A stretch of DNA of 64,000 bases from Syncephalis fuscata S228 (taxonomy: Eukaryota; Fungi; Zoopagomycota). Positions within the stretch are counted from its first letter, which is position 1, and every line of letters begins with the position of its first letter. Shown piece by piece: positions 7,768 through 57,160 of this stretch. The position numbers and the translations under genes were made by a program. The notes under the pieces were generated by a model. It was not told where the DNA came from, ran no database searches, and worked only from the letters and a program-made list of their open reading frames with translations. The stretch spans positions 62,001-126,000 of the forward strand of contig JAHLTZ010000032.1 in assembly GCA_025786725.1 (NCBI GenBank), in the 5' to 3' direction.

Positions 7768-8342
7768 CAATTTGCTGCATCAATGGTCGACAAATAAACT
7801 GTGCCTACCAAGTTGATACCAAGAATGCTCAAGACAATGGTGAACATCAGAAACGCTAGTCGCCCTACCTTTTGTCGCCATAGATGAGTATCTTGCATTG
7901 CAAATCTGCCCAAATGCAACAGTAGAAGATTGGAAGATAGAAAAGACCATTCAGACGCAAGGAAACCACGCTGTACGTAGTAGCAACAGTAATGAATGTG
8001 GAACGATATGAAATCGCGATCAATGGCTTCTAGTAATATTCAAGCAATCTTTCTACACATAGCCAGCAGCAATAATGATAGGCCTTAAATGTTTCAAAGA
8101 AATTAAATAGTATGTTGCATTCTTTATTTAAATGCTTAAAATTATTATTGATACAATGTTCTGTTACATATAATCAATTTTATTTTATGGAAATAATAAT
8201 GTTATTATATTACATTAATATTTATTGTAATATCTCATTTAAACACAGTTTAATCCAATCAACTCGTCAACTATTTAAATCGTTACAATTGCTTGCGCAA
8301 AAAAATTTGCAGCCCATGAGGGAATTAAGGTAAATATCAATC
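7768..8342 (+). mobile_element. 5'-truncated non-autonomous Fanzor-derived element (copy 1, type-B 3' end)
   Basis: Decayed translation FAASM..K*TVPTK...VAIDEYLALQICP.CNS...ECGTI*NRD.MASSNIQAIFLH..NNDRP; homologous to 23040-23365 (-) and to the 3' tails at 48620-48835 and 34501-34645. Confidence 0.8.
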
Positions 8343-22924: not shown

Positions 22925-23670
22925 GGATGAACTGTACTTTGACTCTTACATTTTGAGTCCTCAAAGCAAAATTCGTTCTAATTGAAGTCATGCTGTTATG
23001 CACAACAAACATAGCTATAATGTGTTAATTTGACTATTTTAAAATTCACGAGGCCAATCATTGTTGTTATTGGTCATGCGTAAAAAATTGATCGAATATT
23101 AATAAAAGCCATTGATCGCGATTCCATATTGTTCCACAACTGTTGTTGTTGTTACTACGTACAGTGTGATTTCTTGTGTCTGAATGCTCTCTTTTATCTT
23201 CCAATCTTTTACTGTTGCAATTTGGGCATATTTGCGATGTAAGATACTCGTCTATGGTGACAAGAAGGTAAAACGACTAGCGTTTCTGATGTTCACCATT
23301 GTCTTGAGCATTCTTGGTATCAACTTGGTAGGTGCAGTTTATTTGCCAGCCATTGATGAAGCAAATGGCCTCCACCATATGCAATAGTGATAGATTGAGT
23401 ATCTTCACCAGGAAGATCTTGTGACGACAGTTGTAACCAGGATATACAGTATGCCGTTGAGGTTATTTGAACAGGTATTGATGTAAAATAAGAAAGATAA
23501 AAACTAGGGATTGAATAATGTTTTTTATTGATGTTCAAATACGCATGCTATTTATATTGTTATATTTGATATTATCGGATAATATGCTATTGAGCAGAAC
23601 AATAAGATAGTATTAAGAAAATATGATGAAATAAGTACATAAAAATGTGGGGTCAAAGTACAGTAGCTCC
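22925..23670 (-). mobile_element. non-autonomous Fanzor-derived TIR transposon (copy 2, type-A 3' end)
   Basis: TIRs ggatgaactgtactttgac (22925) / gtcaaagtacagtagctcc (ends 23670); flanks attgattt vs atcgatct (6/8 TSD); minus-strand remnant TIAYGGG.FASSM.GK*TAPTK...VTIDEYLTSQICPNC...CGTIWNRD. Confidence 0.9.
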
Positions 23671-23756
23671 ATCGATCTAATTAATTTGTCAATTATTCAT
23701 TACAATCGATTTTGTAAAAAAGTTGTTTACTGTTCTGCCGCTTTTGAAAAAGATAA

Positions 23757-24163
23757 ATGGATTTCTTTGCTGCCCAAAGATCTTTCTATATTTTACAGGA
23801 AACAATCATTGCTTTTGGTGATGGTAACTTTGGTGCGTCTATGAAAGAAAAACTATCTACCCCTACACGAAAAATCACCAAAATTATCAAGCAAATAACC
23901 AATAAGTCCAATAATTTTATTGAACTTATTTACGTTGATGACTATAGGACAAGTCAAGTTTGTAACGGGCGTAAAAAAAGAAAACTGGAAAAAATAACAA
24001 CTATTGGATTAAAGCGTAAAATAAATGTTGTACTCGAGTGCCAATCTTGTGGCATAGTATAAAATCGCGATGTAATGACTGCGAAAATATACACAATATT
24101 TTTACACACAAAGCAAGAAATAACGATAAAAGTCCGATTGAATTCAGACGTGAAGACAGCTAA
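23757..24163 (+). pseudogene. Fanzor (TnpB-like RuvC nuclease) C-terminal remnant, second family
   Basis: TIIAFGDGNFGASMK...PTRK...YVDDYRTSQVCN...VLECQSCGIV*NRDVMTAK/NI..IF...P.EFRR: RuvC-II region, Zn finger, RuvC-III; internal stop at 24060 and a frameshift. Confidence 0.9.
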
Positions 24164-24293
24164 TTATCAATTTCTTTTCAATAATGCGACTAATAGGACT
24201 TCTTTGCATCCCCACTGGTTAATTCCAGTAAGTAGAATCAGGCTGTTTGTATCATTTTATTAAATTAAAACTACATATTTAGTAATGATCATA

Positions 24294-34500: not shown

Positions 34501-35063
34501 AATTGAAGTTTACTTTGCATTTCCAGGGCAGTAAATCTTTTTACGCAATCAATTGTAATGATTTGATTTGATTAAATTGTGTTTAACCCATCATTTACAA
34601 TAAATATTAACGTAATGTAATAATATTATCATTTCCATAAAATAAAAGCCATTGGTCGCGATTCCATGACATTCCGCATTCGTTGTTATTGCATCTATGT
34701 ACAGTTTGAATTATTGCATCTGAATGGTCTATTCTATTTTCTAATATTCTACTGTTGCATTTTGGGCATATTTGCGATGTAAAATCAATATTAATATAAT
34801 TAGTATAAATATTGTTTATTAAACAGCCACTTCCCTATAGCCAATCTGACTAAATAAATGACAACATATATATATTAAACCAATAATAAAAATAACTAAT
34901 TAGTTACATTATTGTACTGATAATTACACATAAATTAATTAACGTTGGATGTAATATTATACATATTATAGTGATGAATGGATGTTTAATTGTATTGAAA
35001 AGTGTTAAGAAAATAAAGTAAAATGAGTAAATAAAAATGTGGGAGTCAAAGTACAATGGCTCC
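34501..35063 (-). mobile_element. non-autonomous Fanzor-derived element (copy 3, type-B 3' end)
   Basis: Terminus gtcaaagtacaatggctcc at 35045-35063; remnant LTSQICPK.NSR...HRCNNNECGMSWNRD at 34782-34648; body homologous to 48125-48835; TSD not resolved. Confidence 0.85.
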
Positions 35064-48124: not shown

Positions 48125-48835
48125 GAAACTATTGTACAATGATTTCATTTATCTATCCATTTCATCCCTTCACTTTTAAATACAATTAAACACTCATTCA
48201 TTACTATAACATGTATAATATTGCATCCAACACAATTGATTGATGTGTAATTATCATAAATAATGTAGTAATTAGTTATCTTTATTATTGCTTTAATATA
48301 TATACTGTCATTATGATATTAATTGTTCAAATGCCATTTATTTAGTTAGATTGGCTATAGGGAAGTGGCTGTTTAATAAACGCTTTATAATAATTATATT
48401 AATCTTATCTTACATCACAAATATGCCTAAATGCAATAGTAGAGTATTAGAAAATAAAAAACCATTCAGATGCAATAATCCATGCTATATATAGATGCGA
48501 CAAAAATGCGGAACGACATGGAATTGCCATCATATTAATTCTATTAATATTCGACCAATTTTCTACACATGGCCAACAACAATAATAATCGGCCTAAATG
48601 TTTCAAAAAGATCAAATAGTATGTTAATTATTTATTTAAATGTTAAAATAGCAGCCACTAATACAGTTTTTCTGTTACATTTAATCAGTTCTACTTTGTG
48701 GAAATGATAATAAATTACATTAATGGTTATTGTGAATGATAATTTAAATACAAATCAATTATTCAATCATTATGGTTGATTGCGTAAAATGACTTGTTGC
48801 GCTAAATGGGGGGGGGGATCAAAATGATGCCAACC
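48125..48835 (+). mobile_element. non-autonomous Fanzor-derived TIR element (copy 4, type-B 3' end)
   Basis: Left end gaaactattgtacaatgat (degenerate TIR), right end ...tcaaaatgatgccaacc; flanks aaatcata / aattaata (6/8); remnant YLTSQICPKCNS...CGTTWN....SINIR.IF.HMANNNNNRPKCF. Confidence 0.85.
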
Positions 48836-53996: not shown

Positions 53997-55482
53997 ATGG
54001 ATTGGGAAGATTCCTTGCAGTGGTCAGACCCCAATCTATTGGAGCTTGACCAGCGATTGCGCTGTCCTATCTGTAAAGAATTCTTTAAAGCGGCAGTCAT
54101 GTTCGCAGAATGCTCACACAACTTCTGCTCCATTTGTGTACGTCGTTCCATTTCTGCCGAGGGCGTGTGTCCAGTGTGTCGACATGCTGTTCTAGAGACG
54201 AATCTGGTACGGAATAGTGTACTAGATGCCTTGGCAACTAGCTTTGCTTTGACACGGTAAGTAAGATTACAATGATGAAAGTTTATAAACGAATAGCGAC
54301 GTAATAGACCACATTTACACGAGTTAATGGAAAAGACGAGCGTATCTAACGGCATACCATTGGAAACAGCAGCACAAACCACGCCAATTGCACGTAGAAC
54401 ACGCTCTGCTATCTACGATACAAGCGCATCTAGCGACCCACAACAAATTAATGGCGATTCTAGCCCAAAGCGAAGGAAAATAATGCTAAATTCTACCAAC
54501 AAAACATCGCAAAATGCCGGCCATACTCAGTCATTCAATAAACAAATATCGCGTCAGCAATCGAGTGCTAAACAACCTGAAGATACAGGGGAATGCCCTA
54601 TATGCGGTCAAATATATGGCTTATCTCATTTGAATGCTCATGTTAATCGATGCATTGAAAGTAGCTCGTCTTCATCGCCTGTCACATATCAGGCATTACC
54701 GGCACAATCACGCTATGTACCGCCAAAGCTATCAAAATGTGCTATGGTGTAATGAAAGACAAGCAACTACGGGCATTATTAGATGTACGCCATTAGACAA
54801 ATATATTTAAACCTTGCTAATTTGTTATATAACTACTAGCAACACGGCTTGCCAACCCACGGTGATCGAGCAACGTTAATCCGACGACATAAAGAGTTTT
54901 CCCTTTTATACAATGCAAACGCCGATCTTCCCCAGCCAAAACGGCCAGCCGAAGTAGTTAAACAGTTTCTAAAAGATGAACGACAACACTCAATACACAC
55001 ATCGCATGGCAGTTCTACAAGAACACAGCCGATAAAACTAGACAAGGAACATATTGAATCTCACGGTAATACAATGATATATACTACTGTACAATCTATC
55101 TAACTTGCTAAATAGAAAAACGCTATGAAGAGCAATTTCAAGATTGATAGAAAAAGCAAGGTCAACCTATGTAAAATCTAATGAATGCTCAAATGATACA
55201 ATATCCAATGAACATAAAAGCAGCGAACCAACTACAACAAGCACACCTTTAATAGATACAACATCCAATGATACCAATCCTAAACTATTATCCAAACAAA
55301 CAAGAACGAATGATTCAACAATAACAACAGCTGATATTACATCTGATCCATCAACGAGTGCCACTTTTATTATGGCATCTCAAGAGATGGATGATATACA
55401 CCACTTTCTAGCTAATGATTCATTGAACATTGACGACGACGACGACGATGATGATGATGATGATGACGCATTTGCAATATAA
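53997..55482 (+). CDS. RAD18: E3 ubiquitin ligase RAD18
   Basis: LRCPICKEFF..ECSHNFCSICVRR..CPVC RING; CPICG..LNAHVNRC UBZ4; SAP-like GLPTHGDRATLIRRHKEF.LLYNAN.D; acidic tail. Confidence 0.93.
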
Positions 55483-55590
55483 TTTGAATTTGTCTATTTA
55501 ACTTGTTATTTGAATAAGCATTAAAATATGAAATGTTTTCGATGCTTATAGTGATAGCATCACAGTCATATTAATTCATGATGAATTGGT

Positions 55591-55899
55591 TTAACGCGCC
55601 TCAAATTGAATCACTATTATGATAATAGAGATTAGTGTGGGCTATACATCATTCTGACAAACTACTTACTTCGAGTGGTGCGTCGCTTATACATAACACG
55701 ATGACCGCATTCGCGACAACGAATAGGCTCACGCGGCTTCAGTTCATTATCAGCGCCACAATCTAAATTGCTCACTGTCAGTCTACTGTCTAGTTATTAG
55801 TAGATCGATGACTTACTAGCACATAGATAAACAATTTGAGGTGTTTGGTGGATTGGTAGAATCCCTCTGATTGCCTTGATCTTGTTGTATCGATTCCAT
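55591..55899 (-). CDS. RPB12: RNA polymerase I/II/III shared subunit RPABC4
   Basis: Spliced: [45 protein letters not shown]; two introns; start exon needs one frameshift. Confidence 0.93.
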
Positions 55900-56112
55900 G
55901 ACGATATAGTTATGAGATCGTACGCGGCTAAAGTAAATAAAGATTCCTATGTCGACACACGCACAGATAGCTGCAAAAGAAAGGAATAATGAAAATAAAA
56001 ATGGCACCTATTCTTTCACCATAATAATTCATTTGTTTTTTCCCCAATAATAGTCACTATTTACTACGTTTAAGTTGTTTAAATAAATACGTTAGAATAT
56101 AGTAAATTTTAT

Positions 56113-56762
56113 GGCTGCATTGTACTTTGACTTTTACATTTTGAGGCTCCAAACCAAAAGCTCGTTCCATTTGAAGTCATAGCGTTGCTATACACAACAT
56201 AGTATATTACTTTCTATTAAAATTGTAATAAATGATTTAATAAATAATGTAACATACTATTTGATCTTTTGAACATTTGAGGCCGATTATTATTGTTGTT
56301 GGCCATGTGTAGAAAGATTGGTCGAATATTAATAGAATTAATATAATGGCAATTCCACGTGTTCCGCATTTTTGTCGCATCTATATATAGCATGGATTAT
56401 TGCATATGAATGGTTCTTCTATTTTCTAATACTCTACTATTGCATGTTGGGCATATTTGTGATGTAAGAGCAATATTAATATAATTTCATAAAGCCGTTT
56501 ATTAAACAGCCACTTTCTATAGCCAATCTAACTAAATAAATGGCATTTTGAACAATTAATATCATAATGACAGTATATATATTAAAGCGATAATAAAGAT
56601 AACTAATTAGCTACATTATTTACTGATAATTACACATCAATCAATTAGTGTTGGATGCAATATTATACATGTTATAGTAATGAGTAAGTGTTTAATTGTA
56701 TTTAAAAGTAAAGGGATGAAATAAATAAATAAAAGATATGAAAGTCAAAATAGAATAGCTCC
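56113..56762 (-). mobile_element. non-autonomous Fanzor-derived TIR transposon (copy 5, type-A 3' end)
   Basis: TIRs ggctgcattgtactttgac (56113) / gtcaaaatagaatagctcc (ends 56762); flanks aattttat vs aattctat (7/8 TSD); remnant LTSQICPTCNS...CGT/WNC...SINIRPIFLHMANNNNNRP. Confidence 0.9.
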
Positions 56763-57160
56763 AATTCTATAGTAATATATGGCGGTACAAATAAGAAAAG
56801 AAGAACCAAATTTTGTTTGTCCGTTAAATAATGCCACGCAATCATACATATCACTATTTGTAGCCGTATTTTTATAATACCAATTATAATTATTAACGAC
56901 TACAAATATGAAACTTTATAAGACTATTTACTTATTTAATTTTTATTTAATTGAAGCTATTAAACCATTAATATTTATATTACTTATCTTTGTAGTTGAC
57001 AGTCCATAACAGTGGCAAAAGGCCAGTGGGATTTAATTTCTTTTCCGACCAGAACCTAACAAGTCCAACCGCCGTTTTCTCTTGCTACTCCGTGTTTCGT
57101 TCTTATTCTTTCTTGTAGTATTCTCTCGTTATTTGTAAGCGCTCTGTATCAACCTTTAAT

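Follow-up and report, generated by a model that had tools for sequence, protein, structure and literature searches.

Background

In the chytrid Spizellomyces punctatus, 134 ORF-less "ghost" loci of the Spu-1 type have been described, the omegaRNAs of which work with SpuFz1 (Saito et al. 2023, PMC10432273). The ghosts are sequences of about 550 nt with inverted repeats of about 30 nt. They are devoid of any Fz coding sequence, although the genome also has 19 full-length SpuFz1 genes, and they are strongly conserved in their inverted-repeat and omegaRNA regions; the passages on Spu-1 report a conserved CA upstream of the 5' inverted repeat and make no mention of a TSD. The original prediction for the locus analysed here had rightly named these loci as its precedent.

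Fanzor1 elements with TIRs and TSDs and without a transposase have already been described in Mucorales (PMC3627910). These elements contain a complete Fanzor1, and they have 9-bp TSDs and TIRs resembling those of confirmed MuDR elements. Furthermore, non-autonomous TIR/TSD transposons carrying Fanzor2* or Fanzor1 have been reported, the autonomous partners of which were not identified (10.1101/2023.08.09.552727). They are of the cut-and-paste type, encode only a Fanzor, which is intact, and have TSDs of 4-5 nt with the target motif inside; this motif is fixed on insertion (in the ascovirus group, TTTAN to a TTAN duplication).

The MITE family described here shares with the Spu-1 ghosts the short length, the high copy number, the bounding inverted repeats of about 30 nt and the derivation from a Fanzor1 element, but it keeps a coding tail and has an 8-bp TSD. 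With the Mucorales elements it has in common that it is TIR-bounded, transposase-less and Fanzor1-carrying and resides in a zygomycete host, whereas it differs in retaining the tail only, in the 8-bp TSD and in its host Syncephalis (Zoopagomycota). It is likewise alike in type to the elements of 10.1101/2023.08.09.552727, also in having a target motif that is fixed on insertion, but its TSD is 8 nt long and variable, with the motif at one edge.

According to the original prediction no description was known from this fungal group, and no paper in the searchable literature links Fanzor with Syncephalis or Zoopagomycota. Ghost loci and transposase-less TIR/TSD Fanzor1 elements had already been published. 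In its present form the finding is one of annotation, adding a Fanzor1-derived MITE family in a Zoopagomycota mycoparasite, and the flank motif N7-T|AAW described below is the more useful by-product.

The copy at positions 56113-56762

The window, i.e. the whole 64-kb stretch of DNA that was analysed, has a G+C content of 37% and corresponds to positions 62001-126000 of contig C246 in an assembly of 29.4 Mb in 371 contigs. With a probability of roughly 0.8 we regard the copy at 56113-56762 as the fossil of a non-autonomous cut-and-paste DNA transposon (MITE) with a Fanzor1 tail. It comprises the following features, where P0156, a 570-aa Fanzor-like protein, served as reference for both remnant pieces:

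56113..56762, minus (strand of the Fanzor remnant): full-length MITE copy, 650 bp, AT-rich, 88.5% identity to positions 1-665 of the family consensus
56105..56112, no strand: left copy of the 8-bp TSD, AATTTTAT
56113..56142, plus: left TIR GGCTGCATTGTACTTTGACTTTTACATTTT, the Fanzor-3' (RE-like) end
56113..56219, minus: from the remnant end to the TIR tip; by position and by analogy with Spu-1 the putative site where the omegaRNA scaffold would lie, with the guide running leftwards into 56112 and below
56220..56396, minus: piece 2 of the Fanzor tail remnant, ..WNCHYINSINIRPIFLHMANNNNNRPQMFKR.., matching the C-terminus of P0156 with 53% identity over 34 aa (E = 7e-12, single comparison)
56400..56486, minus: piece 1 of the Fanzor tail remnant, ..INIALTSQICPTCNSRVLENRR.., matching "VDEYLTSQICPLCQTRTVANVR" of P0156 with 50% identity over 22 aa
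56733..56762, minus: right TIR, reverse complement GGAGCTATTCTATTTTGACTTTCATATCTT, the Fanzor-5' (LE-like) end
56763..56770, no strand: right copy of the 8-bp TSD, AATTCTAT, matching the left copy in 7/8 positions

The element starts with GGCTGCATTGTACTTTGAC and ends with GTCAAAATAGAATAGCTCC, and inverted-repeat finding returned TIR arms of 24 nt with 79% complementarity. Piece 1 spans the first CxxC and the position of the RuvC-II Glu, which was lost at the deletion junction. In piece 2 the NRD of RuvC-III now reads NCH and the second CxxC is gone, and a stop codon lies between both pieces. The frame of this copy is broken, and PF07282 was not recovered in it. The MITE sits between divergently transcribed, spliced genes.

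Sister copies in the window

Five related copies had been predicted within the 64 kb. All of them were recovered by a BLAST search of 56113-56762 against the window, each at the predicted start, with the limits taken from repeat-coverage profiles. The four sister copies are:

48125..48835, minus: 93% identical to the body of the 56113 copy, with a longer alternative 3' module (subfamily B'); TSD TATTAATT / TATGATTT, 6/8, then AAT
34501..35063, plus: B' 3' module, internal deletion, perfect right TIR, no clear TSD
22925..23670, plus: divergent copy with both TIRs, 73% identity to consensus positions 1-368; TSD ATTGATTT / ATCGATCT, 6/8
7768..8335, minus: eroded ends, consensus positions 124-368 followed by the B' 3' module, no clear TSD

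The predicted high density holds in so far as five copies in 64 kb exceed the genome-wide density, which is one first-look candidate per 45 kb (652 candidates), by a factor of about 3.5, yet this is only a mild local excess. The 8-bp TSDs, which had been described as near-perfect in the best copies, are present at 56113 (7/8), 48125 (6/8) and 22925 (6/8); the copies at 34501 and 7768 have no clear TSD. The copy at 22925 is nested in another repeat, and a paralogue of this repeat (L045) represents the unfilled site, carrying the 8-mer once: ATCAATTT.

In the members of subfamily B' a longer module of about 200 nt (..CAGCAAATCATTTTACGCAATCAATTGTA..) takes the place of consensus positions ~50-123. 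Apart from the window copies 7768-8335, 34501-35063 and 48125-48835 they include the loci L038, L043, L048 and L074, so that the same MITE body circulates with either of two 3' modules on the RNA side, B or the longer B'.

A genome-wide family with TIRs and 8-bp TSDs

The family has a unit length of about 665 bp and amounts to several hundred copies or roughly 1% of the genome. A whole-genome DNA search returned the 652 first-look candidates, of which the best 40 were scored and proved to be complete or nearly complete, their identity to the 56113 copy being mostly 80-84%. Copies are 87-91% identical (9-13% divergent) to the 665-bp consensus, which was derived from 30 loci aligned with their flanks, and the pairwise identity of independent copies has a median of 82.6%.

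The consensus ends GGTTGAATTTTACTTTGACTCTCACATTTT and, reverse-complemented, GGAGCTATTGTACTTTGACTTCCACATTTT form TIRs of about 30 bp that are identical at 23/30 positions and differ mostly at positions 3-6 (left GGTTGA, right GGAGCT), following the pattern GG(T/A)(T/G)..ATTGTACTTTGAC. The TIRs had been predicted as a 19-mer, which has 4 matches in the window versus 0.01 expected; the repeats are actually longer, as given above. Allowing at most 2 mismatches, the 21-nt TIR core matches the genome 179 + 172 = 351 times, compared to 0 matches for the reversed control.

With the element boundaries fixed from the consensus, a TSD of at least 6/8 was found at the fixed offset in 5 of the 22 non-redundant full copies, whereas 0.54 were expected from shuffled pairings (permutation P = 1e-4). 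Two more copies gain such a TSD after a boundary correction of one or a few bases (L015 with 8/8, L013 with 6/8), and the full copies gave no signal in a 9-bp register. The TSD statistics together with the unfilled site L045, which carries the 8-mer once, show that the MITE was inserted with an 8-bp TSD. The original prediction had made itself dependent on TIR/TSD pairs being reproducible across copies, and both the 351 versus 0 core matches and the TSD permutation result demonstrate this reproducibility.

TIRs at both ends, a TSD of fixed length, short size, high copy number and the absence of a transposase ORF (longest ORFs below 60 aa) characterise the family as MITEs. The analysis supports the prediction that the copies are MITE-like, internally deleted derivatives of a Fanzor-carrying TIR/TSD transposon in which the zinc finger/RuvC-III tail and the 3' end were kept.

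Fanzor origin of the coding tail

On the strand opposite to the consensus the family tail reads ..(V/I)IDEY(F/L)TSQICPKCNSR.L.NRR.HLDAIIHAV.RCNN..CG.TWNRDHMASINIQSIFLHMANNNNNR.QMFQRNQ and comprises the RuvC-II Glu, a zinc finger of the form TS-x-x-CxxC...CxxC and the RuvC-III motif RD-x-NA-x-NI. The RuvC-II Glu, the zinc finger and the RD motif of RuvC-III define TnpB and Fanzor (PMC3627910). As C-terminal criterion we used [TS][TS]-x-x-C4 zinc finger-x(5,50)-RD after the RuvC-II Glu. This arrangement is present in the family copies and has decayed in the 56113 copy, where one CxxC and NCH are left.

It had furthermore been claimed that most of the element was deleted while the coding tail was retained. 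This is borne out by remnants of 70-145 codons across copies, whose recurrent breakpoints form an internal-deletion series, and by PF07282 scores of 33-38 bits versus a cut-off of 26.3 in the preserved copies. The copy at 34501 was matched by PF07282 with 26.3 bits on the minus strand (34655-34813).

A profile built from four open tails retrieved 203 proteins at E <= 0.001 among 1.84 billion representatives, with E-values down to 6e-21. The long matches (559-1037 aa) were all aligned at their extreme C-termini, and in each of the six long matches that were scanned PF07282 was the sole Pfam family above the cut-off. A search against solved structures gave Guillardia Fanzor1, TnpB, Cas12g and SpuFz1 as best hits; their E-values of 0.05-0.75 are weak and thus consistent with, but not decisive for, a Fanzor origin.

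These weak structural matches, as well as the broken frame and the missing PF07282 match in the 56113 copy, are what might be expected if the locus were an ordinary MITE with an AT-rich interior that resembles Fanzor by chance. However, PF07282 lies above the Pfam cut-off in the better-preserved copies, the family profile finds Fanzor-like proteins always at their C-termini, and the motif order DEY-TSQ-CxxC...CxxC...NRD-x-NA-x-NI is kept in family copies, which also read ..IDEY(F/L)TSQICPKC..C(N/G)..WNRDHMASINI... On these sequence grounds the Pfam score and the profile search effectively refute a chance resemblance, the probability of which appears negligible.

All named relatives of the tail belong to the Mucoromycota (Thamnidium, Rhizomucor, Cunninghamella, Rhizopus, Parasitella, Umbelopsis, Backusella and Benjaminiella), and no other Zoopagomycota were found among the named close relatives. 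Syncephalis is a mycoparasite whose hosts are Mucoromycota (Mucorales); the assignment of the genome to it is supported by a PanE-like protein in the window, which shows 65% identity to Syncephalis pseudoplumigaleata, compared to 34% for the next best match. The restriction to Mucoromycota would fit a transposon transfer in which the family may have passed between host and parasite, but it could also simply reflect biased sampling. The closest relatives, from Thamnidium, Rhizopus, Parasitella, Rhizomucor and Cunninghamella, come from the same group as the described Mucorales elements (PMC3627910).

Two contigs with full-length relatives, L081 (Logan) and L082 (Thamnidium), were considered as a guide to the ends of the parent element and rejected since they share only coding similarity and no TIRs with the family. 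In L081, which contains P0156, an open frame of 165 aa that runs off the contig lies one stop codon upstream of the 570-aa ORF. Hence the P0156 protein may be longer, or L081 may represent a transcript with read-through or frameshift.

Nuclease, coding decay and RNA

According to the original prediction the copies would form a current repertoire of guide RNAs, each with a different flank-derived guide, served in trans by an autonomous element encoding transposase and Fanzor. Four full-length Fanzor1-like queries (568, 570, 863 and 1037 aa) were compared with the 29-Mb assembly in six frames. Each of them matched dozens of places, but only with its C-terminal tail: no match extended upstream of about residue 423/570, 428/568, 732/863 or 935/1037, and the matched portion corresponds to the last 85-145 residues. 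A complete Fanzor with WED, REC and RuvC-I was not found in the assembly with the four queries, and no PF07282 match in the genome is part of an open frame exceeding 168 aa. The long Fanzor-encoding copies that had been proposed as a check did not turn up in these searches, which give figures for the best-scoring candidates in a 371-contig assembly that may lack an intact Fanzor. PF01385 had no match and NF040570 matched only with positions 322-387 of 389; both are prokaryotic TnpB models and uninformative for the N-terminal parts.

The evolution of the Fanzor tail is close to neutral, with a pN/pS of 0.76 and 19 new stop codons in 21 copies relative to the consensus. Conservation amounts to 74% at consensus positions 1-30, 79% at 31-60 and 85% at 61-90, compared to 89-97% in the interior, so that the putative omegaRNA (3') end is the least conserved part of the MITE. 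The Spu-1 ghosts show the reverse pattern, their inverted-repeat and omegaRNA regions being strongly conserved (Saito et al. 2023). For a ghost locus of the Spu-1 type a full-length Fanzor element with related inverted repeats would also be expected in the same genome, and the 19 full-length genes of Spizellomyces contrast with none found in the Syncephalis assembly by the searches described above.

RNAalifold predicted four pairs (-0.03 kcal/mol) and no shared fold for the last 155 nt of 25 copies, such alignments of decayed copies being a weak test of RNA structure, and no Rfam match was obtained. Single-sequence folds are mildly better than those of shuffled sequences (mean z -1.3; -1.6 for the 56113 copy with its flank).

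The locus is represented in one public RNA run, apparently an mRNA library of assembled spliced contigs. Since these contigs contain GT..AG introns of 50-56 nt and most of them match the window with an identity of 99% or more, their sequence identifies the run as the transcriptome of the same or a very close strain. Contig depth is zero over 56025-56208, a stretch comprising the left TIR together with the positions of the putative scaffold and of the guide it would have. Since small RNAs cannot be seen in assembled contigs of an mRNA-like run, which might fail to capture a small omegaRNA, the zero depth means that support is lacking but does not prove silence. Within the interior of the MITE there is overlap with contigs that stem from other members of the family.

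It is nevertheless conceivable that the copies form a live ghost-locus repertoire, expressing omegaRNAs with flank-derived guides while the Fanzor is encoded elsewhere or missing from the assembly. Their architecture is like that of the Spu-1 ghost loci, the omegaRNAs of which are functional (PMC10432273), none of the deletion derivatives has lost the 3' module, which is also kept across three tail families, the fold z-scores are mildly negative and a one-sided WTTA occurs where a TAM should be. However, neither the four queries nor two HMMs revealed a full-length Fanzor, the coding sequence decays neutrally, the 3' end is conserved least and has no consensus structure, and the RNA contig depth is zero there. 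Taking these points together a live repertoire seems highly improbable, and the claim of a current repertoire was not sustained.

The original prediction had stated that the lack of small RNA and of an intact Fanzor would reduce the family to a fossil, and with no intact Fanzor detected and no support from the one RNA run this is how we read it: the family looks like transposon debris, not like a live guide-RNA system. It thereby documents the survival of such a family beyond its nuclease.

Two copies (L017 and L019; C279:253887-254551 and 265762-266415) lie 12 kb apart, are 98.5% identical and have unrelated flanks and no TSDs, which points to gene conversion between neighbours or to an event much younger than the rest of the family. 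Their identity despite different flanks counts against the fossil reading, as it could mean recent movement instead of gene conversion.

The 56113 copy might alternatively persist as exapted regulatory DNA, i.e. as promoter or 5' UTR of the neighbouring genes. On its left side a spliced minus-strand gene (55400-56024) ends near 56024, with the deepest RNA coverage in the 5.5 kb examined. On its right side a 975-nt plus-strand contig begins within the right end at 56695 and continues into the downstream gene up to 57667, and the same run has contigs with loose ends that carry other family copies. However, contig ends at repeats are often assembly breaks rather than transcription starts, and the 56113 copy is conserved no better than other family copies. 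We therefore consider exaptation improbable.

The fossil reading suggests the following history. As shown by homology, the ancestor was a TIR-bounded element of roughly 2-3 kb with a Fanzor1 gene. Internal deletions took away the part from the 5' untranslated region down to RuvC-II, leaving about 240 bp of the 5' end, the last 70-145 codons and about 200 bases from the frame end to the 3' TIR (about 125 of them non-coding). A transposase acting in trans would have recognised the ~30-bp TIRs and generated 8-bp duplications, preferentially at N7-T|AAW, giving rise to the several hundred copies. In the days of an intact Fanzor, an omegaRNA reading through the TIR into the flank was probably produced from the 3' module, as in Spu-1 and its ghost loci. 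At present the copies decay neutrally with no intact Fanzor detectable, and the element lacks a demonstrable function beyond that of intergenic DNA between two divergent genes.

A one-sided motif in the flank

Among 35 non-redundant right (GGAGCT-type) ends, T occupies position +8 in 30, A position +9 in 29, A position +10 in 29 and A or T position +11 in all 35. TAA occurs at exactly +8..+10 in 22 of these ends, compared to a background of 3% (binomial p = 3e-25). The resulting motif N7-T|AAW lies on the Fanzor-5' side and straddles one TSD edge only. At the 56113 copy positions 56770-56773 read TAGT, i.e. the T|AAW motif with one base decayed. The mirrored TTA is absent on the left flank, where only the T at -1 that is required by the TSD and an A or T at -11 were detected. 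Cut-and-paste (DDE) transposases usually prefer palindromic targets, which makes this asymmetry unusual.

In Fanzor orientation the motif corresponds to WTT directly upstream of the TSD, the first base of which is A, so that insertions have the form 5'-WTT[A-N7]-element-[A-N7]-flank. A guide running out of the 3' TIR would consist of the TSD (A-N7) and the flank, and WTT(A) would thus be located just 5' of the target in the unfilled site, in the position of a TAM. The TAMs known for Fanzor1 are likewise short AT-rich sequences (TTAA, CATA, ATN).

N7-T|AAW may therefore be a fossil TAM or an asymmetric preference of the transposase. Tentatively, the one-sided motif could be the fossil TAM of the lost Fanzor, a reading that we consider doubtful. 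In composites of two tail families (see below) the motif remains associated with the GGAGCT-type TIR, in these elements found at the 3' side of the A tail; since the orientation of the B tail is the usual one in the composites as well, they do not separate the two possibilities.

If the motif was a TAM, only insertions landing beside it would have reached fixation, and Fanzors in TIR/TSD transposons would have had the empty allele as their target, and not the excision footprint, thus serving for homing or drive. The role of Fanzor for TIR/TSD transposons was left open in the discussions of Saito 2023 and Bao & Jurka 2013. The asymmetric N7-T|AAW motif provides a testable prediction of such a role.

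Superfamily and candidate transposase partners

As TSD criteria for the superfamily, 8 bp with short TIRs was used for hAT and 8-11 bp, with TIRs often starting with G, for Mutator/MULE. The TIRs of hAT elements usually start with YARNG. The 8-bp TSD of the MITE would fit hAT, but its TIRs start with GG and not with YARNG. A hAT affiliation was rejected due to this GG start and to the absence of Dimer_Tnp_hAT matches in the genome, the latter being a weak blank because the positive controls were silent as well. The DDE_Tnp_IS1595 (Merlin) domain was not found in the genome either.

The 8-bp TSD is at the low end of the Mutator/MULE range. MULE domains were detected at about 10 places of the genome, at least 4 of them in uninterrupted open frames, and none lies inside a long TIR pair among those listed; MULE copies are located, among other places, at C90:23312, C351:15327, C336:21728 and C339:307853. 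Candidate long elements with these TIRs, possibly autonomous or with cargo, are marked by two pairs of perfect, inward-pointing TIR cores at C339:593247-599721 (6.5 kb apart) and C328:389908-399675 (9.8 kb apart).

Further tail families

A third tail family, A (..DIDEYNTSKVCSKCKKKEMAG..WQRDVNASRNM..), was observed in composites only (L031-L033, L035, L036, L042 and L043). From left to right these comprise the left TIR, a B tail, in some cases an internal right TIR, an A tail on the strand opposite to that of the B tail, and the right TIR. The A/B composites thus have an outward-pointing Fanzor 3' end at each terminus, and their deletion derivatives have the outer TIRs in common.

Family C is a second, unrelated Fanzor 3' fragment (..YVDDYRTSQVCN..), which is located in the window at 23671-24261 on the plus strand, directly after the MITE at 22925-23670. 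It was matched by PF07282 with 32 bits in the genome search and is without the GG..TGTACTTTGAC TIR. Its relatives L034, L037, L045, L047, L050 and L063 share upstream sequence common to the paralogous loci, and their homology stops at the conserved hairpin CTGGTTAACTCCAG, which is followed by a GTAAGT resembling a 5' splice site.
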